Positions 2,469-56,000 are shown, counted from the first letter of the stretch. The stretch: 64,000 bases of DNA from Mytilus trossulus (GCF_036588685.1 NW_026963347.1:496001-560000); one strand, 5' to 3'. Numbers and translations are program-made. The notes: generated by a model from the letters alone, not told the origin.

Positions 2469-5244
2469 CATGCTCGGATGGAAAGTATGGTGAGGATTGT
2501 AATAGTGACTGTAATTGTTCAACATGTAGTACCTGTGATAATGCTACAGGCAACTGTTTATGTTATGAGCAATCGATTCCTCTGGAAAAATTAACAACAA
2601 AAGAATACACATCAGGTTGCAATTTTAGTTTATAATTTGGATTTCTGAAAATCTTATTGATTTGTAACTTGTCAAAGGCACATTTCATGTGGTATTATTT
2701 TAACAAATTACTTCAATTGGTGCATGCTGACATTATTTTGATGGAAAATATAAGTTTATATCGTTGATGTTTGGAATATTAAAAAGAAGATGTGGTATGA
2801 CCGCCAATGAGACAACTCTCCACAAAAGACAAAATGACACAGAAATTAAAATCTATAAATCACCGTACGGCCTTCAACAAGAGCAATTAAAGCCTTTCAT
2901 CATTGCAAAAGACGAACTGAAAGCGCTAAGTCAATTGATCAGTGGTATTACATGATAACAAATTAAATATCACTCTTGCAAAACTGCTGACTTTGGTACT
3001 TCCATTTATCTTTTAGAAGATGTGAAGGTGTAACGTTTATGCTAGAACAAACAGACATAAAGAGCTCGATCAGTTGATATGGAATAACTTGTAATAAAAG
3101 TTTAATTTGCATTTGTTCAAAACTTGAATTCAATTGATATTAAACAGTATGCCATAAAAGGCTAACCGTAATACATGTGTAATATATATCAATCATAGGT
3201 ATGAACGTAGTTTTCAATTTAGACTCGTTTATATTTTTTGTTTGGGCATGTATCATATTTTCCCTTCGGTTTATATGATCCGTTCGTCCTATATTGTCTC
3301 TTAAATTCAAGAGTCAATCTTAAATTGAGAGTAAATTATATGGCCTTCCAAATACCGTTTCGATCCCTAACATCACTGAAGAGACATATATTGTCGAAAT
3401 CTAGATCTGGTGTAAAAAAAATATTGACACCGAATGTTTGTGGCACAACATCGTGGCCACAAGTTAACATATTTTTTTTTCTGTGACGTATTAAATTTAT
3501 GTTAAGATCCATTTTGTTACATCTTGTGATCAATTTTATTTGGCAATCGCCAATGGCGATCAGCAGGGTTAAAGAACATCAGTTGTTCGACCTGTTAGTT
3601 AAATGCGTTTTGTTTAGATAAACTTTTTCACTTTTTTGGTCTTTTGAAAAATGTTGTTTGTGCTGTTTTTATACCCTTCTACAACGAAATTTGTTTGACA
3701 TGCACACGTATAAAAATTGCGGTTTTTATCCAACGCAATCATAGGTTTGAACGTAGTTTTCATTTTAGACTCATATATATATACAACTCGTCTAAACATC
3801 AACCCAACAATGTTAGATCTGTTAATTGGCGTTCGCAAATTTTTGGTTCTTCCCTCGCCGGGATTCGAACCCATGCTACTGTGATATCGTGACACCAAAT
3901 CGCCTGCACTGCAGCCGTCCCGCTAGACCACACGACCACCTGGGCTCTCAAAAAAAAGCTTTCGCTGGCCATGTGTTACCTTTCCACGCCAGTTTTAATC
4001 TAGCGGCGTACTACAGTACATGATATATAAGGCATGAAGATGTTATTGTTACAGATCAGCTAAATTATCTATAGTAAAGGATCCTACAAATTAATGTAAG
4101 ATACAGTCACAGAAAATAATTATATTCATAAGTACGTCTGAGTCAGTGACAACCCTACAACAGATGTATCCATCGGATCGCCATCAATGATTGTGATACA
4201 TGGCTGTGTACATAAAGTATAAACAACTCGTCTAAACATCAACCCAACAATGTTAGATCTGTGAATTTGCTTTCGCAAATTTTTGGTTCTTCCCTCGCCG
4301 GGATTCGAACCCATGCTACTGTGATATCGTGACACAAAATCGCCTGCACTGCAGCCGTCCCGCTAGACCACACGACCACCTGGGCTCTCAAAAAAAGAGC
4401 TTTCGCTGGCCATGTGTTACCTTTTCACGTCAGTTTTAATCTAGCGGCGTACTACAGTACATGATATATAAGGCATGAAGATGTTATTGTTACAGATCAG
4501 CTAAATTATCTATAGTAAAGGATCCTACAAATTAATGTAAGATACAGTCACAGAACATAATTATATTCATAAGTACGTCTGATTCAGTGACAACACTACA
4601 ACAGATGTATTCATCGGATCGCCATCAATGATGGTGATACATGGATGTGTACATAAATATATATATATACATTTTAAACTGTGGCAGTGGCTGTTTCAAG
4701 CTAATCTGCATTTGTGTACCTATAGTTATCAAATGATCAACACGTAGTTGGGGTATTTTTTCTTGACATGCGTACTGTCCAATAATTGTTTGTTATTTTT
4801 GCAAGAGCCTTTTAACGCGTGTATTAATCAATTTCAAATAGCTTATTTCGAAAATTAAATTTGTTAAAATAAATGAATTTCATTTCAGAGAAGAACCATT
4901 CATCACATTTTATTGCAGTATATGTCGGCATGGCTTCGGCGTTGATGGTTCTTGTTTGTATAGTTGCTGTTATTGTAAGAGTTCAGCAGAAAGTTTACAG
5001 ATTTTTTAGGTCAGGCAAAAGGAAATGTCCCAATGTGAAACATAAAGTACGAAAAATCATTCCGAAAAAGTCTAACGACCATACACACAATGAATCTGTC
5101 GAAGCTGTTCCCAATATTTTTGAAGCGCATGCGCAACCGTTTCTGTGTGAACTTGGTGATGGCTACTGCGAGGTATCCAATGTAATTAGCGCTCCAAATC
5201 ATACTAGACATACTGGTATTGATCATATTGACATTACAAGTTAA
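2469..5244 (+). CDS. 3' part of an EGF-like single-pass membrane receptor gene (gene A; exons 2469-2615 and 4889-5244; 5' exons not identified)
   Basis: An AG/GT-bounded phase-1 exon of 147 nt encodes CSDGKYGEDCNSDCNCSTCSTCDNATGNCLC (laminin-type EGF as in MEGF/SREC). The next phase-1 exon, after TTTCAG, encodes TM helix FIAVYVGMASALMVLVCIVAVIV, a basic stop-transfer segment and a tail with YCEV. Confidence 0.8.
3190..3772 (+). mobile_element. 546-nt hammerhead retrozyme-like element (one unit plus ~37-nt terminal redundancy) in a (TA)n tract
   Basis: CAATCATAGGTWTGAACGTAGTTTTCAWTTTAGACTC occurs at 3190 and 3736 (period 546). The unit contains a canonical HHR and has TA runs on both sides. 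Its 3' end recurs at 49711-49798. Confidence 0.8.
3370..3413 (+). ncRNA. Type I hammerhead ribozyme (canonical core, palindromic stem III)
   Basis: ACAUCA-CUGAAGA-GACA(uauau)UGUC-GAAA-UCUAG-AUC-UGGUGU. Stem I is 6 bp, stem II is 4 bp, and AUCUAGAU is a palindrome. Predicted cleavage is after C3407. Confidence 0.9.
3781..4656 (-). mobile_element. ~2 tandem copies of the ~440-nt tRNA-promoter-containing structured unit, bounded by (TA)n
   Basis: ACAACTCGTCTAAAC repeats at 3783 and 4223. The minus strand has A-box-like TGGTCGTGTGG and B-box GGTTCGAATCC. The same unit occurs at 48909-49700 and 53086-53750. Confidence 0.85.
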
Positions 5245-5370
5245 TTTTTATAACACTTTTCATTGGGCAAGTCTATCCTTGTATATATATATGCTTTAAT
5301 TAATTCACCACATTATTGTTTCTTTAAGATTGAAGTTCATTTACTGGAAATTTTGTTACGTATTGTACAT

Positions 5371-7389: not shown

Positions 7390-7800
7390 TTCTGACATCG
7401 GATTCGAACCTTTTTTAAACTGGATTTAACTGTACACATTGCTATGTTTTTGTTTATTCAACATTGGCTAGAGGTAACGGGGGAAGTTTGAGATCTCACA
7501 AAACATGTTTAACCCCGCAGCATTTTTGCGCCGGTCCCAAGTCAAGAGCCTGTGGTCTTTGTTAGTCTTGTTTATATTTTAATTTTAGTTCATTTATATG
7601 TTTTGGAGTTAAGTGTTACATTGTACGTCCATTTTCACTGAATAAGTACACAATTTTATTTAGGGGCCAGCTGAGAACCGAACCACTTCGGATGCGGGAT
7701 TTTCTCGCTGCATTGAAGACCCATTACCTAAGGCTATTGTCTGCATTTTGGTCGGGTTGTTGTCTCTTTGCCATATTCCCAATTTTCATTCTCACTTGTA
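7390..7800 (+). repeat. Interspersed repeat family 2 (unclassified)
   Basis: ACATTGGCTAGAGG...CCCAAGTCAGGAGCC...GGGGCCAGCTGA...CCCCATTTCCATT is shared with ~30495-30737, 37150-37540 and 48130-48600 (reverse). Confidence 0.75.
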
Positions 7801-26611: not shown

Positions 26612-26905
26612 AATAAAAATTAACGGTACCAATTTTCTTGCACCAGATGCACATTTCAACAATACATGTCTCTTCAGTGATGCTCGTGGCCAAAATATTT
26701 GACATCCAAAGCTTATATAAAAGATGAAGAGCTATAATCGAAAGGTCCAAAAAGTATAGCCAAATCCGTGAAAGGAATCAGAGCTTTGCATGAGGAAGAG
26801 ACATTCCTTAATTTATAACTATTTTTTAATATTTTGTAACAGCAAATTTTAATAACACAAACAAAAATCCGTATTATCATACCAGTACCGAAGTACTGGC
26901 TACCT
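26612..26905 (-). mobile_element. Retrozyme-like element, second family, 5'-truncated
   Basis: Carries an HHR near its 3' end followed by GGTACC. It has the same layout as, and patchy similarity to, the 359-nt family. It is absent from duplication copy 1. Confidence 0.65.
26640..26683 (-). ncRNA. Type I hammerhead ribozyme (near-canonical)
   Basis: The reverse complement reads GCAUCA-CUGAAGA-GACA(uguau)UGUU-GAAA-UGUGC-AUC-UGGUGC. Stem I is 6 bp and stem II closes with G-U. Confidence 0.75.
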
Positions 26906-32200: not shown

Positions 32201-35200
32201 GTTTCTAACAGATAAAAAAAAATGGCTTTGTTGTTTTTAGTTTTAATAAAGATTATGTTAAGCGTTGGTTGTTAAATGTACATGAAATTGTTATCAAAGG
32301 TACCAAAATTGTAATTTGGTATGCCAGACGCGCGTTTCGTCTACATAAGACTCATCAGTGACGCTCATATCAATATATTTGTAAAGCCAAACGAGTATAA
32401 ATTTGAAGAATATTGAGAATACAAAATTCCAAAAAGTTGTGCCAAATACGGCTATGGTAGTCTATGTCTGGGATAAGAACATCCTTAGTTTTTCGAACAA
32501 ATCTAAGTTTTATAAACAGAAAATTTATATAAATGACAACATTATTGATATAAATGTCAACACAGATTGTTGACTACTGGGCTGGTGATACCCTCGGGGA
32601 CGAAACGTCCATCAGCAGTGGAAGGAGCTTCAATATCCTTAAAATTCGAGATTTAGTAGGAATGGGTAACCCTGAAACTCCGCACAAAAAGAACTTTAAA
32701 AAACTCGAATGTCGCCTGCTTGTCATAGCCCAGACAAGATAGTTGGTTGCGCAAAAGGCTCTCCAGTTTGAATTAGGTCCTCCTCCAATGTATCTTACAA
32801 ACTTTGATGGTACACATGTAACGAAAATTAAAATCTGTCCTGGATGGTCTTTTATAAAATGGTCATCTCTTAGAAAGCATGTGAATATTTGAAGACATGG
32901 CAGTTATTCAACCCATTACTAGGATACAAAGCACTTTTTTTATTTGGCAATTGTTATTTTAAAAATAATCCTTTAAGTTTCGAAAAGAGGTCCCGCATTG
33001 ATTTTGTCACTGATTAGTATCCCACAATATCCATAACAAAATTAAAACAGCAGGTCCTTGGGAGGGACAAATCTTTACGATAAGTTCTAGACCATCACAA
33101 TCGTGTTCTTGGGAATGGAAGAAATGTTTGTTAGTTGGGGAAAACAAAGTTGCTCTTGTTGAATTCTTTGGTTCGGAAAAGAGTAAATAATCCTATAGAT
33201 TTACACTTGAATGTATTGATTTATGTGTATCACACGGAAGTATGTGCCACAAAATAAATGTTGGAAATGAAATAGCGTAGAATGGTTTTATCTTATAATC
33301 AAACAGGAAGAAGCCGATTACAAAATGTTTCTTAATGCAAAAATATGCAGCTGACAAAAGTAACGACACCATTGTTATAAAACCTTCTGACATTGATGTG
33401 GAAGAATTGGCCTACTATTTTCACAGTTGCATATCAATTCTAACATTGTTAGATTGGTGAGAATGTTTGTAGAAAACTGCCAGGATTTCACGGCAGTACA
33501 GGTTGTGATTCAGTAAGTGTTTTGTGTGGTAAAGGAAAAAAAGCAAAGTATTCGGCTTTTTGACACGTTATGTGTTTTCGGAAGGTCTATTCCATCGTGG
33601 TGAAACCTTTGAAGAGGTTGACGAAGAGTTGACAAAACTCTCGAGAGGTTTTCGTGTTCTATATATGCATACGAAATTTAAAATATCGATGAAAAAAGAT
33701 CAGGACGTTTTGAAATGCAACCAAAAACAGATTTATTGACATCTACTGTCCCCAACAAAAGATGCAATGTTAAAGCACATAAAACCATCCAACTTTCAGA
33801 CGAAGATTTGGAAATCTGCTCTTAAACACAACACTGGTCTGTTGCTAAACAACTATAATTGGATTGTTCAGAACGATTTGATCAGTATCAATTGGCTAGA
33901 CCAACCACCAGCGTTAGATGCTTTAATAATTATGAAGTGCTGTTCATTTAAAGCTGGTTGTGCCAACAACAGATGTTCATGTGTTCAACAAGGTTTCTCC
34001 TGAACAAATACCTGTATGTAAATACTCGAAAGCTTGTAGATATAAGGATTATCAAAACGTTGATATTGCTAATAGCGATGACCACGAATATGATGGAAAT
34101 GATGATAATGAAAATTCGGTAGATGCAGGTGACCAAACTGATGATGATTCTATGGATTGAACTTCTGCATGACCTTTAAATGTAGTGATTCGGTTGTTAA
34201 AAAAAAATTAAAAAGATAGAGATCTAGAAACCCTGACAGTTTTGTGTGTTTTAATATGTTAGTTATTTCATGAATATGATGTATGAATTTGTGACAGAAT
34301 CGTGCATTTCTAGTTGCCTATGTTTGTGTCTGTCGTTGATTCTATATTTTTGTTTCTTACCTTTAAATGTTTTTTTCAACAGCCTTTACATTGTAGTTAC
34401 ATTATGCTCTATGTTTTAATATGAAAAATATACCGTATTATCAAGAAAATTAGTACTTTTGCTTCTTTTCATTGAAAATCATGAATTTTGGAAATTACCC
34501 TCCCCCTTTTTTCTTGGTCCTCTACGATTGAAAAATTAATTGAAAATTGGCCTGCGTTTTAATAAGATATAATTTGTTCCATTTAATAAAAAGAATAGTA
34601 CTGAATTATTGGTTATTTTTACATTTTTCTGTAAATATGTGCAAAACAAAATTTTTGATATACCCTTAAATAAGTCCCCTTTTAACCCCTTTTGGACACT
34701 TTTTCAAAAGTCTAACACCTCTTAAAATATTCTTCATATATTACTCTTTAAATTTATACCAAAAAATTGCTGTACCCTGGGGTGTACTCAGAATTGAAAT
34801 TTTGCCCTACCAGCTGATGGACTATGAACACGAATTATATTTTCCTAAGGAGGATATACACAACCAGAAAAACGAACATTGTTTGGGGTAATAACTCTTA
34901 AAAAAAGGTCCTCGGCTAAAAAGGATGAGTTTCAAAGCGTAATATAAATGTTTGATATAATATTCAAAACATATTAAAGACATCTTGCGATACCCCTATA
35001 AACTGCATGAAAAATAGGTGGAAAATTAAAAAAAAATTTAGTTTAAACAGAATCTATGGATTTTTCCTACATATAAGAGGTAAGACCTAATAAACGGGTT
35101 GGAAATTCGGGAATAATGCCATGTATTTTGGATAAGCAAGGAGAGTATGCATAGATAAGGGAAGAAAACATGCCTCGCAAATGGATAAATCTGGACTCTA

Positions 35201-47000: not shown

Positions 47001-50000
47001 TTTTTTTATATTTTAAAAATTGATATATATTAGTACGTAAGTGTTAATTAACATCGTGTTGAAGTTATATTATGATTGTTTATTGTGAAATTTTAATTTC
47101 TATACTGTATTGAATACATTTTAAATTTCAAGTTGTTGTTCAAATTTTATTATAAAAAAACAAAATTGATAAAATTCAGTTGATAGATTCAAAGAATAGG
47201 TCTAGGTTGGTTAAGACTTGGTCGAGTATGGTTCAGACTAGGTCGATTACGGTTCAGACTTGGTCGAGTACGGTTTAGACTAGGTCGAGTACGGTTCAGA
47301 CTAGTATAAAATGGTTAAGTACTGGTCAAGTACACATTCAGACTGTTAAGTATGGTTCAGACTACAGTCGAGTAAAAATCAGTTCAGTCGAGTACAGATA
47401 TAGGCCATTTCAGACTAATAATGGTTTGTAGTGTTATATTGTCAAAAATAGCCCATATTTATGTAACAATGAATAGCTAAAAGTTCACATTATCAAAATT
47501 TTGTAAAACTGATTCTGGGACCAAAAATGGGTCCTACTGAACCTACTCCTATCATATATTACAGGGAAACGTGTGGGTTTTTTTCATCAAATGATGCCAA
47601 AAGTTAAAAAAATGTGTCCTATGACCCCGCCTGTCAACTAACATGGACAATATAGCTAAACATAAAACACGGGTAAAATGCAGTTTTGGCTGATATCTCC
47701 GAAACTAAAGCATTTAGAGGAAATTTAACAATGGGTAAAAATGTTTATCAGAATAAGATTTATCTGGTAAATGAAATGTTTAGCCGTTGTTGGTTTGCTA
47801 ACCCTGAATGAGTAATTCCAAAAAAAAATGCAGTTTCTGATTAGTTTTGTAATTTTAAAAGTAACTGTAATTCAAAGTTACATAATTAACAATTATTTTG
47901 TTCAACTATAATTGATAGGGCTTGGTAAAATTTCACATTAAATGTACCTTGAAGATATTTAATTATATTTTTTTTAGAATTGTCTACCTAAGGAATATAT
48001 TTCCTTTTGCTGGATTTTCACAATACTTTCGGAAATTTGGTTCTACCTTTTTTATGTTGCCTAATGTTTCTATTATTCTTTATTGTTTGACGTCTGGTGT
48101 GCACAAAGTTAATTAGGTATAGCTAACAAAATTAAGAAATGGAAATGGGGAATGATTCAAAGCAAAAACAAGCCGACAAAAGAGCTTAAAACAGCTCAAA
48201 GCCATCAATTGTGAAATGCCGCACCCGGAGGAAGGCTTTCGCTGTCCCCTAAACAAAAAATATGTACAACTAGTTCAGGGAAACTTGCCGACAAACTTAA
48301 CTCCAAAACATAAAAAAAGAACTAAAATTTCAATTATTACAAGACTAGCAAAGGCAGGATGCTCCTAACTTGGTAAAGGCACAACAATGTGGTAGGGATT
48401 TACATGTTTTGTGAGGTCTCAATACTCCCAAATACCTTTAGTCAACTTAAAACAAACAAACACACAGCAATATGAATAGTAAAACTCAGTTTAAAACAAT
48501 TTCGAATTCGATGTCAGAATAGGTACATGTAAAAAAAAAAATAAGTCAAATTAAAATGATACATAAAATAACAAAGAATTCCTAGCAGTTACTGATATGC
48601 TTCCTCGTGACCTCAATTAAAGGGATTGAACGATTATGTCTTCGTCATATGAAAATCAAGCACAATCCCTCCCTATGGGGGTTGAGTATAATACCATCGT
48701 AAATATATAAGAAGACCATAATCCGTATCATGTCAAGAACTGGTCCAGGAATAAATGTAAAAATTGAAATGGGGAATGTGTCAAAGAGACAACAACACGA
48801 CCAAACAAGCACAAAACATCCAACGCGTTACGACTACCGATGTGTCTTCAACACAGCGCAGTATGCTCCCACTGTTTATTTCGTATACAAAGACCCTACA
48901 TATATATAGAATATAATTATTTTCTGTGACTGTATCTTACATTAATTTGTAGGATCCTTTACTATATATAATTTAGCTGATCTGTAACCATAACATCTTC
49001 ATACCTTATATATCATGTACTGTAGTACGCCGCTAGATTAAAACTGACGTGGAAAGGTAACACATGCCCACCGAAGGCTCTTTTATTTGAGATCCCAGGT
49101 GATCGTGTGGTATAGCGGGACGACTGCAGTGCAGGCGATTTGGTGTCACGATATCACAGAAGCATGGGTTCGAATCCCGGCGAGGGAAGAACCAAAAATT
49201 TGCGAAAGCAAATTTACAGATCTAACATTGTTGGGTTGATGTTTAGACGAGTTGTATATACATTATGTACACAGCCATGTATCACCATCATTGATGGCGA
49301 TCCGATGGATACATCTGTTGTAGGGTTGTCACTGACTCAGACGTACTTATGAATATAATTATTTTCTGTGACTGTATCTTACATTAATTTGTAAGATCCT
49401 TTACTATAGATAATTTAGCTGATCTGTAACAATAACATCTTCATGCCTTATATATCATGTACTGTAGTACGCCGCTAGATTAAAACTGACGTGGAAAGGT
49501 AACACATGCCCATCGAAAGCTCTTTTATTTGAGAGCCCAGGTGGTCGTGTGGTCTAGCGGAACGGCTGCAGTGCAGGCGATTTGGTGTCACGATATCACA
49601 GAAGCATGGGTTCGAATCCCGGCGAGGGAAGAACCAAAAATTTGCGAAAGCAAATTTACAGATCTAACATTGTTGGGTTGATGTTTAGACGAGTTGTATA
49701 TATATATATAGAAATTTGTTTGACATGCACACGTATAAAAATTGCGGTTTTTATCCAACGCAGTCATAGGTTTGAACGTAGTTTTCAATTTAGACTCGTA
49801 TATATATATAATTTATATATATAAAAGTCTATAAAAAGGACCAACCAGCAAATTTACTATGTACCGGATCGTCTAGAATAGGCGATACTATGCAGATAAG
49901 GAAAAAATTATATCAGTCTAAAGATTTGCACAACGGTACTGATATAAGGTGTTATTAAACAAAAATGTTGTTATAAAATCGTGTTGACAAATATTTCGGC

Positions 50001-53000
50001 TCAACAAATGGCCTTCTTCTTGTGTCACAAGTTTTAACAATACTGATACATAATGTACAAGGTGTGAAAATAGATCAGTAATAATACAGGTAAGTTTTGG
50101 TCGATTGATTTTAATCCTGAATATCATAATTTAAACAAAACACTATAAATCAATATACGTGACTGTGTATATTAACAATAAAAATAAGTGAAAAACAAGA
50201 CTGTTAGTATTTCTTATTGATGCCGTTTGGGTGATGTACATTAAGTTCCTTTATCCAAAAGCTTTCCCGAACCTGTCGCTGTGTATCACTCCAGTGAATG
50301 TTCTGCTCAATCACTAGAATTTTCATGCGGTTAAAGTCATCAAGTTTGTGATCCGACTGTCTGAAGTGCTGAGAGACTGGAAGAAGTGGCTTCTTCGAGA
50401 TATCACTCCTATGGCCATTGAGGCGTTTGTGGAAAGGCTGCTTTGACTCGCCAACATATTGGAGGCCACAAACCGAACATTCTAGTATGTAAATAACATT
50501 CATACTTTTGCAGGTAACATTGCAAAATATCTTATAGTTATTTTCGGTTGCCTTACTGTGAAATGTTGACGAATGCTGCATCTGTAAACAGCATTTGCAG
50601 CGTTTTTTTTCCACACGAACGACATTCTCCAGGAGTACTTCTATTATCAGACACTTCAGCCCGCACTAGCAGGTTCCGCAGACTACTAGGTTGCCTAAAA
50701 GCTATCATTGGAGGCTCAGGGAAAATCTTGGACAGTTTGGAATTCTTTTCAACTGATTTCCAATGCTCACGAATGACACCAAAGCTGTTTTTGAGAGATG
50801 GGTGATAAGTAAGAACACATGGAGTCCTTTTATTTTTCTTTTTAACTTTGTATTCCAATAGTTTACTCCTCGGAATTGACTCCGTTTTCTGAAAGCTTTT
50901 TTTTGATATTTCTGTGTTTGTAGCCCCTTTTCTTCAAGCGAGTTTCAAGTTTACGCAGTTGTCTTTTAGTTGTTTCTGTGTTGGAGCATATTCGCTTGCT
51001 TCTAAGTGCCTGACTGTATGGAATGCTCTTGGTAAGATGAGCAGGATGGCAACTTTAAGGGGACAAATATTGATGAGTGTCAGTAGGCTTAGAATATAAA
51101 TCTGTAGATATGATGCCCTCTGTGAGCGAACTTGAAGTATCGAGGAAGGCGATTTTGGATTTAGACTTCTCATGAGTAAATTTGATACTAGGATGTATGT
51201 TGTTGGCATGAGTGATAAAAGTGTCTAAATCCTCGTCGCTTTTGTTCCATTTCATATCCACATCATCTATAAATCTAAACCAGGAAAGCGGTTTTTCGAT
51301 GGAAGTTTCAAGGAGTTGTTTCTCTAATTTGCCCATAAATATGTTGGCATATGACGGAGCCATTTTGGTGCCCATGGCAGTTCCATTTACTTGCAAATAA
51401 TGATCTCCATCAAAAGTAAAGTTGTTTTTCTTAAGTACTAGCGTGAGCATTTTGACCAGGCATTCAGTAGGTGGATATTTTACTGGTCTGGAATTCCAAA
51501 CTTCTTTGCATGCATCGATGCCATCTGCATGTGGAATATTAGTGTAGAGGGAGGTAACATCCATGGAAACAAGAGTCGTGTCGGAGGGGAGTGGGTTTAA
51601 GGCCTGCATTTTTCTAAGATAATCGGTTGTATCTTTGATGTGAGATGGTAAGTCTTCAACATGTTGACGAAGATGGAAGTCAACAAATTCCGATATTTTT
51701 TCCGTCGGATGACCGTTCGCTGAAACTATAGGTCTTCCGGGGTTATTGGCCTTATGAATTTTAGGTAATAGATAGAATCTGTCCGGTTTTGGGTTTTCTG
51801 GTTTCAAATATTCAAGAGTTTTGTCATCGATGAAACCATCGTCATGCATTTCTTCCAAACTATTAGTAATATCTCTGCTAAAAGATGTAGTAGGATCAGA
51901 GTCTAGTTTTTGGTAGAACCTTGCATCGCTAAGTTGTCGTTCAGCCTCTTGAATATAGGCAGTTTTATCCATGACAACCACTGCACTGCCCTTGTCTGCA
52001 GGTTTAATGACGATATTGTTGTTAGATCGTAAGTTTTTCAGTGCAGTCCGTTCTTCATTGGTAAGATTGTCAAAAGGTTTATTGTTATTTTTAGTATTTT
52101 TAATAATGTATGACTTAAAGTTATCAATAAAAGATTCCAAGGTAGCATTTTTGCTCGGTCTAGGGATCCAAGAACACTTTTTAATAAATTTGTAGTTGTT
52201 CTCTACTTCTGAAATTTCTGAGTCCCCATCCGCGCTTATTATGTTATCCTCCTTCGACGCGAAATATTCCTTAATACGTAGACCTCTAGCAAAATTGTCA
52301 AGGTCTTCCGACAATTTGGTGTCATTGACAGGAGCAGGTAGAGGACAGAAGTTAAGTCCTCTAGAGAGAAGAGATGTTTCCGATTCCGTTAATTGGTGTT
52401 GAGAAAGATTGACCACGATGTTGGAGGGTGAATCAGTCTGTTGAGGTCTACGTTTAAAGCGTCTTATTCGTTTAGTCTTTCTCTCTGATGGTAATGAAGG
52501 GTGGGTGTATTCTATGCCATCCCTGCGGAATTTTCGTTTTTGTCTTTCACTTAAGTTGTTGGATTGTATAGTAGTTATGTCCTTGAGACGAGTGTTGATA
52601 GCATCACAATTGTCAGATGTTAGATCTCTTTTGCAGCTATTCAAAAGGGTGTTAAACTCGCCAGTGAGAGTTTTGAGATGTCCTTCGCAGTGTTGTTTAA
52701 GGAGGACCACTAACCGCTTTGAACAATGGAAGAGGGTTTGGTCCCATCTGCGAAGTAGTGTTTTGGATAAAGAGCCAGGTGCTTGTGGCTTGATCTTGAT
52801 TTGTAGTCCGTTAGGAATACGTTCATTAAACTCGTAGTTAATCAAATTAGATAAATGGTGTTCAGTTCTAATTTGTTTTTGTTTAATAGCTCTAAGTTGT
52901 TTAAAATAATCATTGATGTTCATGATATAAGAGCTAAAAACTTAAATTTGCTGGGATTATGTGAGTAACATGATACAGGTCATTCAGGGGGAAAATAATA

Positions 53001-56000
53001 TAAAAGTCTATAAAAAGGACCAACCAGCAAATTTACTATGTACCGGATCGTCTAGAATAGGCGATACTATATATATATATATCTATACGCCGCTAGATTA
53101 AAAATTGACGTGGAAAGGTAACATATGGCCACCGAAAGCTCTTTTTTTTAGAGCCCAGGTGGTCGTGTGGTCTAGCGGGACGGCTGCAGTGCAGGCGATT
53201 TGGTGTCACGATATCACAGTAGCATGGGTTCGAATCCCGGCGAGGGAAGAACCAAAAATTTGCGAAAGCAAATTTACAGATCTAACATTGTTGGGTTGAT
53301 GTTTAGAAGAGTTGTATATATATATATATATATATATACATATACAACTCGTCTAAACATCAACCCAACAATGTTAGATCTGTAAATTTGATATATATAT
53401 ATATAAGTACGTCTGAGTCAGTGACAACCCTACAACAGATGTATCCATCGGATCGCCATCAATGATGGTGATACATGGCTGTGTACATAATGTATATACA
53501 ACTCGTCTAAACATCAACCCAACAATGTTAGATCTGTAAATTTGTTTCGCAAATTTTTGGTTCTTCCCTCGCCGGGATTCGAACCCATGCTACTGTGATA
53601 TCGTGACACCAAATCGCCTGCACTGCAGCCGTCCCTCTAGACCACACGACCACCTGGGCTCTCAAAAAAAGAGCTTTCGGTGGGCATGTGTTACCTTTCC
53701 ACGTTAGTTTTAATCTAGCGGCGTACTACAGTACATGATATATAAGGCATATATATATATATATATATGTATGTTTCAATATTAATACCAAATTATTCCA
53801 TCTCTGATGACCTTACAACAGTATCCTAACTATATCCCTTCTCAGTAAGTCTGTTTAAAGGTTTGTCTGCTTTATATAATATAATACCCTAATAAAAGAT
53901 TGGATGTTAAATACCTGAAAGTATAAATTTCTGCATGATGCCTTCATTGCCAAAATATTTAAAAATGTTTTGACTAGTTTGTGAAATCGAAAACCCTGGT
54001 ATATTAACAATGTTGCAGTAACACAGATATTTCTTTTGTTAAAATCAAATACATTTCTTATAAACAGGTTGCATTATAACGCTGTAACATTATTTTTTTT
54101 CAAACTGAGCAAATTTCAGTTTGTATGTTTTGAGCAAACTATATTAGATTAACTCATCTTTCCACATTTTGCTTTCAACATGTTTTGGTCGGGGGGAAAT
54201 TTCTAAAATTATACAATCATCCAAATTTTGGCTATTATTCTTTAATGCAATATTAAAAATAATAAAAAAGCAATAAAAAACATAGAGAGAGATAGAGTGC
54301 ACACGAAACACATATAGTCGGATGATTTTATTATTTTCTGAAGCATGTCCAGCAGGAACTTACGGGAAGTTTTGTAAGAATCACTGCCTAAAAGGTCAGT
54401 TTGGTAAAATGTGCAACTCTACATGCCATTGCAGTTCAGTTCAGGTATGCAACAATATATTTGGATGTGTCTGTCCAGAAGGATTAACAGGAAACAAATG
54501 TGATAAAGGTAATGTTGGAAATAATTCATTCAACTTTAAGACATGCTCTTTTTTACTTCAATCATGTGTTAATAATATAAAACAACAAAATTTTATGTTA
54601 ACACTGCAATTGTCAAATTCAGATTGAAATTAACCTTTTATACTCGCCATTAACAAATATATTAACTATAAAGATTGATAGACTAACTGTTGATTTGATT
54701 AACGTTCAGTGTCAAATGTTTCAAGCATTTTAAGATTAGACAAAAGAAAAGACGTCAATATTATAAGTAGGCATTTCCGATAATGTATTTTCTATTGTTT
54801 TTATGCCACAATTTTTGACCGGCACTTGAAGCTTTAGTTAATTGAATCCACACTATTGTCACTGGTTTTCACAGTTTATAACGTTTTAACTAAACGGATC
54901 CACAAACAAGACGCAACGCTCACTGGTGATACCATGGATATTTTTCATCAATACATCTACTTTCAAAATTGGTATCTGTATTGTTGGAAATTGGTTGATG
55001 TGTCATTGACATACAGGCCCTTTTACACTATTTGAAATAGATGATGTGAATGATAACTGATGAATATATATATATATGCCTTTTACATGACTATTTTTAC
55101 GTTGGCCTATGGAACGTTTTTTTATCTTCACCAGAGTGCATATTCTATGTTTGTCATGTGAAATCTAAACAGAAAAATTGCAATGTTTACTAATTGTTAT
55201 TGTAGATGTTACATCTGTAGAAAACACTTTCACAAATATTGTTGTTACTGGTTATGCAAGTGAAGCTATCACTATCGAGGAGACACCAATCAAAAGCAGT
55301 GGTAGGTAGATGCAGCATCTAATAATAATAAATAATAATGACAACTTAAATTGACTTCCAATTGACGAATTTGACTTATCACAAAGAGGCGAATAAACGC
55401 ATCATCAACATGTTTTATAAAACCAATTTCTCCCGCTACCTTTACCATGTTTACATATCAACAAAATACATTGTATATTTGAAATGTGGATACAGCTCGA
55501 TAATGATACATATTATTTTTTAAATAACATGGTAAAAGCAGATGTTATATTTGTAACAAAATTTCACGCGAAAATAAATTTATCAGTTTGATTTACCTTT
55601 TTACAAAATTTTCATTTTCACTTATTTTACCATGAAATATGAATTTCGTTATTGTAGAACCATCGAATAAAGAATGGCTATGGTATACAATTTGTATTAC
55701 TGGAGCTATAATAATAACTGCGTCAAGTCATGTATTGCGTTCTTATAGAAAGCGAAAATTAAGACTTACAAATGAAGAAGCAGTGGTGGAATCAACAACA
55801 ACTTCTCAGTATACTGGTTTCTATCATGAAATTGACGAAAACATTTTTAAAGATGTCACACCAAGCCTATCCCTGGTATCACACCCATCTAAAATGGAAG
55901 CTATGTGCTTTATTCCACAAGAGAATTCGTTGATCACAAGAAGCACTGAACTTGTAAATACAGATTATCTTGATCCTGTATTCGCAGCAGAAGACGACGA

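Follow-up and report, generated by a model that had tools for sequence, protein, structure and literature searches.

A candidate system of a (TA)n-targeting Penelope-like element and two non-coding passenger repeats in a mussel genome

Overview of the locus

We examined a 64-kb window (G000:C72:496001-560000; "the window" and all plain positions refer to this whole stretch of DNA) in a 1.30-Gb assembly of the mussel Mytilus trossulus, where a single interrupted (TA)n tract at 48900-53767 holds a Penelope-like element (PLE) together with copies of two non-coding tandem repeats, a 442-nt element (442-mer) and a 546-nt element (546). We regard it as probable that this arrangement is best explained by a young TA-cutting PLE family and by AGAC-boxed non-coding 442 and 546 RNAs (hereafter passengers) that would be copied by the same kind of machinery. 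TA targeting and the link between PLEs and retrozymes are already published, PLEs being the proposed mobilisers of retrozymes (Cervera & de la Pena 2020, PMC7229834; Li et al. 2026, bioRxiv 10.64898/2026.07.22.740005). We found no published description of the short shared box, of PLE/passenger chimeras, of a tRNA-headed, ribozyme-less tandem passenger, or of a PLE-dependent element resembling a short interspersed element (SINE).

The map of the tract (Table 1) was made by blastn self-comparison and direct reading of the sequence, with the unit phase of the 442-mer set by 49262-49703. It confirmed almost all of the first-pass annotation, which had described one TA tract with 442-mers, a 546 piece and a PLE, each separated by TA runs. 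Both non-coding families recur in a smaller second nest at 3190-4669.

TA tracts as a shared and reused target

Junction statistics were taken over 40 merged regions (204 kb) that were picked by similarity to the window's copies, and a 3' end was scored when (TA)≥4 followed within 4 nt, with random positions as the control. Canonical 3' ends ran into (TA)≥4 in 34 of 43 cases for the PLE and in 29 of 36 for the 442-mer; for the 546 family the count was 8 of 14, and most of the others were followed by shorter TA. The criterion was satisfied by 0.1-0.4% of the random positions, meaning that the rate of 3' ends at TA runs was 200-800 times that of the control. Furthermore, 9 of the 13 (TA)≥5 runs of the window adjoined one of the three families, and these two results together indicate that the association between the families and TA goes beyond chance. 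The PLE family is thus strongly TA-specific, as the first-pass annotation had supposed.

In 30 loci, PLE copies finished at unit position 3089 or 3179, and these 3' ends ran directly into (TA)n in nearly all cases, internal tandem junctions aside. On the 5' side, 24 of 45 442-mer ends adjoined (TA)≥4 and TA also preceded several simple PLE 5' ends, which argues for insertion into a pre-existing tract over a tail that is added one-sidedly. The tracts are also reused, since a passenger lay within 1.5 kb in 20 of 28 PLE-selected regions and 13 of 43 PLE tails faced a passenger tail over a TA run.

The Penelope-like element

In the window copy of the PLE, Pfam assigned RVT_1 to the 622-aa frame and GIY-YIG to the last one; in a sister copy whose 905-aa frame is open, RVT_1 lay at aa 416-593 and GIY-YIG at aa 808-894. 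Inspection of the 905-aa translation revealed DKG, a C-x4-C-xx-C linker just before the endonuclease (EN) and C..C...H..H (CCHH) around GIY/YVG; the EN is C-terminal, with no N-terminal EN. Judging by a reverse transcriptase (RT) followed by a C-terminal GIY-YIG within one open reading frame (ORF), the window family would be a canonical C-terminal EN+ PLE. The label "Neptune" that was initially attached to it is plausible from the domain order and the Zn-finger motifs (the CX4CXXC linker and CCHH) only, whereas the hammerhead expected of canonical Neptune/Poseidon elements was not found in the PLE unit with Rfam (E≤5) or with a search for CUGANGA...GAAA on both strands.

The window copy had been called near-intact, and it is indeed 98-99% identical to open copies, but it is dead: a stop codon interrupts the frame at about 51055-51057, and two surplus bases, in the T runs at 50904 and 50610, split the frames downstream. 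Copies of the family are 97-99.5% alike (97.6-99.5% among full-length ones), and the 905-aa frame was open in 4 of the 7 full-length copies read; the family is young and probably still active. A protein search returned thousands of PLE proteins, many from Mytilus, with matches that were all "uncharacterized" and a best named match from Mytilus edulis (94% identity).

The window copy has a pseudo-long terminal repeat (pseudo-LTR) of 73 bp, and many of the 30 PLE loci held 5'-truncated copies and copies paired head-to-head with an overlap of 2-8 nt. The Neptune/Nematis-type PLEs of Craig et al. 2021 (PMC8557442) share the pseudo-LTR from a partial tandem, 5' truncation and an adjacent inverted 5'-truncated copy, and the hallmarks given there match the 5' truncation, tandems and inversions seen here; a (TA)n preference, which that study linked to the linker domain, is also seen in the mussel PLE. 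On the other hand, the mussel PLE has two alternative 3' ends 90 nt apart, compared with a published "tail" of only 30-40 bp, and neither a canonical nor a minimal hammerhead was detected in its unit.

A short box ahead of the 3' ends

The three families use five 3' end types, namely 3089 and 3179 in the PLE, 441 and 96 in the 442-mer, and position 45 in the 546 unit. AGAC stands 2-10 nt ahead of the terminal TA stretch in all five (TAGAC in four, CAGAC in one). When AGAC was sought within 14 nt upstream of the 16 TA stretches of at least 5 nt in the three units, it was present at 5/5 used but 1/11 unused stretches (Fisher p=0.0014), and the sole unused stretch with AGAC sits in the hammerhead core. 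The 442-mer has only two AGACs, one at each of its two end types, and its longest internal TA stretch (7 nt, position 188) is without AGAC and is never an end. A shared tail of the classic type known from SINEs and long interspersed elements (LINEs) was considered and rejected, because similarity between PLE and passenger tails beyond the box was not significant in shuffle tests.

The genome has a second PLE family, of 43% aa identity, that likewise terminates in AAGAC-AT-(TA)n, and its 3' untranslated region (UTR) carries a PLE-type minimal hammerhead (CUGAUGA...GAAA, helix III about 1 bp). The same box in a second family strengthens the signal and at the same time removes the exclusivity of the window family. 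We put forward tentatively, as something possible rather than probable, that AGAC-N(2-10)-(UA)n serves as an internal RT initiation signal in a TA-targeting PLE clade and was acquired independently by at least two unrelated non-coding RNAs, one of which, ribozyme-less and with a tRNA-like head for RNA polymerase III (Pol III), would be the first PLE-dependent SINE-like class.

Chimeras and passenger RNA

At three loci, a 442-mer ran without intervening TA into a 5'-truncated PLE of like orientation, the two overlapping by 4-9 nt at the junction (442 position 390 to PLE 259, 410 to 1234, and 131 to 1307), and one 442/PLE composite was flanked by TA at both ends. The three junctions look like template switches of the RT from PLE RNA onto 442 RNA, and as such they would tie reverse transcription by the window PLE family to 442 RNA.

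We read about 6% of the data in each of two stranded RNA runs that bear a related label. Depth was about 1300-1800x on the 442-mer, about 120-220x on the 546 piece and 1-8x on the PLE, the passenger RNAs being roughly 300-fold above PLE RNA in abundance. The first-mate strand flipped with the orientation of the copy, indicating that the passenger RNA is strand-specific, and the polarity deduced from the usual library convention puts the box at the 3' side, with which the hammerhead-bearing strand of 546 agrees. The stretch itself is present in DNA runs of five organism labels.

The few PLE reads (49879-52975) of one run had, with hardly an exception, the same first-mate strand as the (+) 442-mers, and these presumably antisense PLE reads may represent read-through from neighbouring passenger arrays. 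Read "ends" at 49114/49124 were rejected as RNA ends and taken as mapping artefacts, since the first 442 unit has a cluster of mismatches there, and joints that go back (49703 to 49395 and others) were rejected as a sign of circular RNA because genomic arrays can yield them.

The 442-mer

Arrays of the 442-mer reach at least 16 units of 98-99% identity and open with a 5'-truncated unit, and head-to-head inverted arrays join where both are truncated at almost the same point, overlapping by 2-11 nt. The 3' ends fall at position 441/442 (n=29) or 96 (n=7), with TA beyond in all. Fixed passenger 3' ends, as first annotated, were therefore found for most copies, but the last 442-mer copy of the tract ends at unit position 96 and not 441, representing a second, recurrent 3' end type. 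The 5' ends (n=45) were scattered over the whole unit, which bears out the variable 5' ends of the first annotation. This scatter also matters for carriage by Helitrons, Helentrons or other AT-inserting DNA transposons. In its favour, the insertion site of Helitrons lies between A and T, and satellite arrays are found in bivalve Helentrons; however, the 442-mer has no constant 5' terminus and its arrays border directly on TA at either side, without any other element's terminal sequence intervening. Transposon ends are excluded by the passengers' lack of fixed 5' termini, and we give this explanation almost no credence.

Units of the 442-mer differ by 0.14% within an array and by 1.0% between arrays. 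Such near-identity would fit an origin at the DNA level without reverse transcription, either by the expansion of a satellite or by extrachromosomal circles that re-integrate at fragile TA tracts, and TA tracts are known fragile sites. We nevertheless consider it highly improbable, given that the ends are polar (3' fixed at boxed sites, 5' variable), that abundant strand-specific RNA of matching polarity exists, and that chimeras with a retroelement occur. Within-array identity was also rejected as proof of rolling-circle copying, since copying of homogeneous master arrays fits equally.

An exact B box was present in every 442-mer copy that covers that part. The window has 7 B-box matches against 0.05 expected, 6 of them in 442-mer copies, and the remaining match at 7400-7410 was rejected as part of a 442-mer because it sits in unrelated sequence. 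An A-box-like match (9/11) lies about 50 nt upstream of the B box; no tRNA fold was found for the head with ARAGORN and Rfam, and no hammerhead was found in the 442-mer. The RNA fold of the unit is strongly structured (z = -5.0, paired ends). More 5' ends than expected lay 6-22 nt upstream of the A box (7/45 vs 1.7, P about 0.002-0.007) and TA-flanked monomers of 166-176 bp exist, suggesting that some templates may be Pol III transcripts.

The exact B box and near-consensus A box, the cluster of 5' ends and the short monomers are also what one would expect of an ordinary SINE of tRNA origin that has a (TA)n tail, if it were copied by a LINE and made into tandems by later recombination. However, most copies continue well beyond the head on its upstream side as parts of multi-unit arrays, first units are 5'-truncated, head-to-head pairs and TA on both sides occur, the chimeras are with a PLE and not a LINE, and ARAGORN and Rfam gave no tRNA fold, so that we judge an ordinary SINE improbable. 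Compared with bivalve tRNA-derived SINEs (PMC11481361, PMC4758252), the 442-mer likewise has a B box with an A-box-like match, a 3' microsatellite and a non-coding body, and some of its head-to-tail monomers likewise begin near the predicted Pol III start. It differs from them in lacking a cloverleaf, a LINE-derived tail and a known conserved core domain, in that most copies are multi-unit arrays including 270 nt upstream of the head, and in its PLE-type insertion signature. SINEs are recognised by a tail taken from a LINE partner and by dispersed monomers, whereas the 442-mer tail has nothing beyond the AGAC-(TA)n box in common with PLEs.

The 546 family and other hammerheads

Arrays of the 546 family run up to about 13 units, with 5' truncation and tandems, a 3' end fixed at unit position 45 and a favoured 5' end at position 497 genome-wide. 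Each unit has a type I hammerhead core (CUGAAGA...GAAA, helices I and II) that is conserved in 13 copies, with cleavage only predicted. The palindrome of helix III covaries (UCUAGA / UCCGGA / UGCGCA), and cofolding of a dimer gave an 8-bp helix III, as known from PLE and newt ribozymes; Rfam Hammerhead_1 gave no match to the core at E≤5. The piece in the nest is the short 497-to-45 form, with the 3' end and the AGAC box but without the hammerhead, and is 96% identical to window 3686-3786. Many 546 arrays start exactly at 497 (window 3686, 49711), giving a 97-nt terminal redundancy, and RNA reads cross this position, meaning that 497 is not a general RNA 5' end.

Similar to the non-LTR retrozymes (PMC7229834; bioRxiv 10.64898/2026.07.22.740005), 546 is a transcribed non-coding tandem repeat, and each of its units carries one putative type I hammerhead whose helix III is palindromic like that of PLE and newt ribozymes. 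Its unit of 546-578 bp is, however, longer than the 350-390 bp of the described mussel retrozymes, and it is linked to PLEs through target, 3' box and architecture and not through pseudo-LTR homology.

Two further hammerheads lie in the window. The one at 32321-32364 (-) is of type I, scored 35 bits as the window's only Rfam gathering-level match, and belongs to a repeat other than 546; a similar start (CACTGATGAGTC) is found downstream of the 3' UTR of a third PLE family (C6:52891744-52895184, about nt 985-1000). The core at 26633-26682 (-) is 86% like that of 546 in different surroundings, and appears to represent a retrozyme-like family, either older or separate, without clear TA-flanked ends.

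A proposed mechanism and its weighing

In the mechanism that we infer, the GIY-YIG/Zn-finger endonuclease of the PLE would cut (TA)n microsatellites, and reverse transcription would begin internally on the PLE RNA, at the UAUA stretch 2-10 nt downstream of AGAC, which could pair with the nicked TA end. Both the 442-nt element, which has a tRNA-like A/B-box head but no ribozyme, and the 546-nt element, whose units each have one putative type I hammerhead, carry AGAC-N-(UA)n and would be copied by the same kind of machinery. Both would thus end up in shared tracts and, the target being palindromic, in either orientation. Variable 5' ends would result where cDNA synthesis stops short, tandems from the copying of multi-unit transcripts or from template jumps, head-to-head inversions from priming on both cut strands, and the PLE/442 chimeras from template switches. 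Since each insertion would leave TA at its tail, a tract could be struck repeatedly and build up into a nest. The structure of the nest, the target specificity, the common box, the chimeras, the open frames and the RNA levels were observed directly, whereas the acting protein, the part played by AGAC and the form of the RNA template are inferred.

Target-primed reverse transcription (TPRT) in vitro by the Poseidon element PAc of Anolis (Frangieh et al. 2024, PMC11167929) has several of these features, namely internal initiation at two discrete sites, an AT-rich target, unprocessed multimeric RNA as a template as in our proposal, and cutting and extension of both strands, which would explain the mussel head-to-head copies. 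However, PAc initiates at an AC-rich stem-loop that has no homology to its target, whereas the mussel ends lie at a target-pairing UAUA after AGAC, and PAc was tested biochemically while the mussel PLE is known here from sequence alone.

Several points weigh against the proposal. The junction statistics come from a small sample chosen by similarity, and at the 3' flanks TA may have been added by the element instead of being there beforehand. PLE RNA is scarce and in one run lies mostly opposite to the ORF strand, if the usual convention holds. The PLE unit has yielded no hammerhead, and, the tails being dissimilar beyond the box, the partnership rests on 4-7 nt plus TA. Finally, the second PLE family with its minimal hammerhead has the same AGAC-(TA)n end, and with many more PLE families in Mytilus the protein source is not pinned to the window family. 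This last point would favour mobilisation of the passengers by another TA-targeting PLE family or families, the window family merely sharing the landing site, as would the resemblance of the hammerhead-bearing 546 to the second family while the window family is without a ribozyme. On the other hand, three junctions fuse the 442-mer directly to 5'-truncated copies of the window family, which is young, has open frames and carries the box at both of its end types, and we consider mobilisation by other families alone unlikely.

With regard to the PLE as the driver, as the first-pass annotation had it, the passengers do share its target, its short 3' box and its 5' truncation, and the 442-mer also shares head-to-head inversions. 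These features and the 442/PLE junctions support that role, but not a sole role, given the second PLE family with the same box.

Coordinates and neighbouring features

Table 1. Features of the TA nest at 48900-53767, of the second nest in the window and of the second PLE family
Feature	Position	Strand	Basis
TA run, left edge of tract	48900-48908	.	direct reading
442-mer, 5'-truncated, unit positions 90-441	48909-49260	+	blastn, 96.9% to adjoining unit
442-mer, full unit; main-type 3' end at 49702/49703	49262-49703	+	blastn and reading
Landmarks of the full 442-mer unit	A box-like 49550-49560; exact B box 49609-49619; AGAC about 49687-49690	+	
TA run, 442-mer tail to 546 piece	49697-49710	.	
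546-family 3' piece, 101 bp, unit positions 497-548 plus 1-45	49711-49811	+	blastn
Interrupted TA run, 546 tail to PLE tail (tail-to-tail)	49799-49823	.	
PLE, one full unit, 3179 bp	49819-52997	-	blastn
PLE 3' end type 3179 (alternative internal type 3089 would fall at 49909)	49819	-	
PLE, two overlapping frames (50858-50553, 50614-50204): Zn-finger-like linker and GIY-YIG endonuclease	50204-50858	-	
PLE first frame, 622 aa, reverse transcriptase, ends at in-frame stop	51055-52923	-	
Pseudo-LTR, 73-bp upstream partial copy of PLE 3' end	52998-53070	-	100% direct repeat of 49819-49891
TA run, upstream of PLE pseudo-LTR	53068-53081	.	
442-mer positions 188-442, head-to-head with PLE pseudo-LTR	53070-53321	+	blastn
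(TA)12 separating two 442-mer tails (tail-to-tail); long hairpin with tails	53315-53338	.	
442-mer 51-bp 3' piece, positions 390-440	53340-53390	-	blastn
TA run, between two minus-strand 442-mer pieces	53392-53405	.	
442-mer positions 182-441 plus 1-96; second 3' end type (position 96)	53396-53750	-	blastn
TA run, right edge of tract	53750-53767	.	
Second nest, 546 family, 1.1 units; type I hammerhead core from 3376	3190-3786	+	
Second nest, two 442-mer units, tail-to-tail with 546 copy over TA run 3774-3783	3777-4656	-	
Second nest, further TA run	4658-4669	.	
Second PLE family, 3' part, then a 442-mer	G000:C2:14282268-14287656, nt 3976-5331	+	

The facing 442-mer tails around (TA)12 make up a near-perfect hairpin of about 115 nt at 53272-53387. 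A microRNA gene at this position was rejected, as Rfam matches in the searched interval 48800-53900 were confined to sub-threshold ones to many microRNA models and the sequence is the 442-mer tail-to-tail hairpin itself; tail-to-tail nests of this kind could feed small-RNA pathways. A tandem repeat at 47209-47364 with a 21-nt unit (42 and 63 nt also scored; 76-92% matches) is unrelated to the nest.

Implications

Knowledge of how PLEs choose RNA templates and copy retrozyme-like repeats has so far come from one in vitro study (PMC11167929) plus correlative evidence (PMC7229834, bioRxiv 10.64898/2026.07.22.740005). The locus described here supplies a short, mutable candidate cis signal common to autonomous and non-autonomous partners, as well as natural template-switch-like chimeras that link the PLE and the 442-mer, and its ribozyme-less passenger separates mobilisation from hammerhead function. 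If the proposal is true, a box of about 10 nt would be all that any abundant RNA needs to become a PLE passenger, and the TA microsatellites of such genomes would grow by self-reinforcing insertion. This would explain the compound repeat nests at mussel TA microsatellites, and it matters for the assembly and repeat annotation of bivalve genomes.

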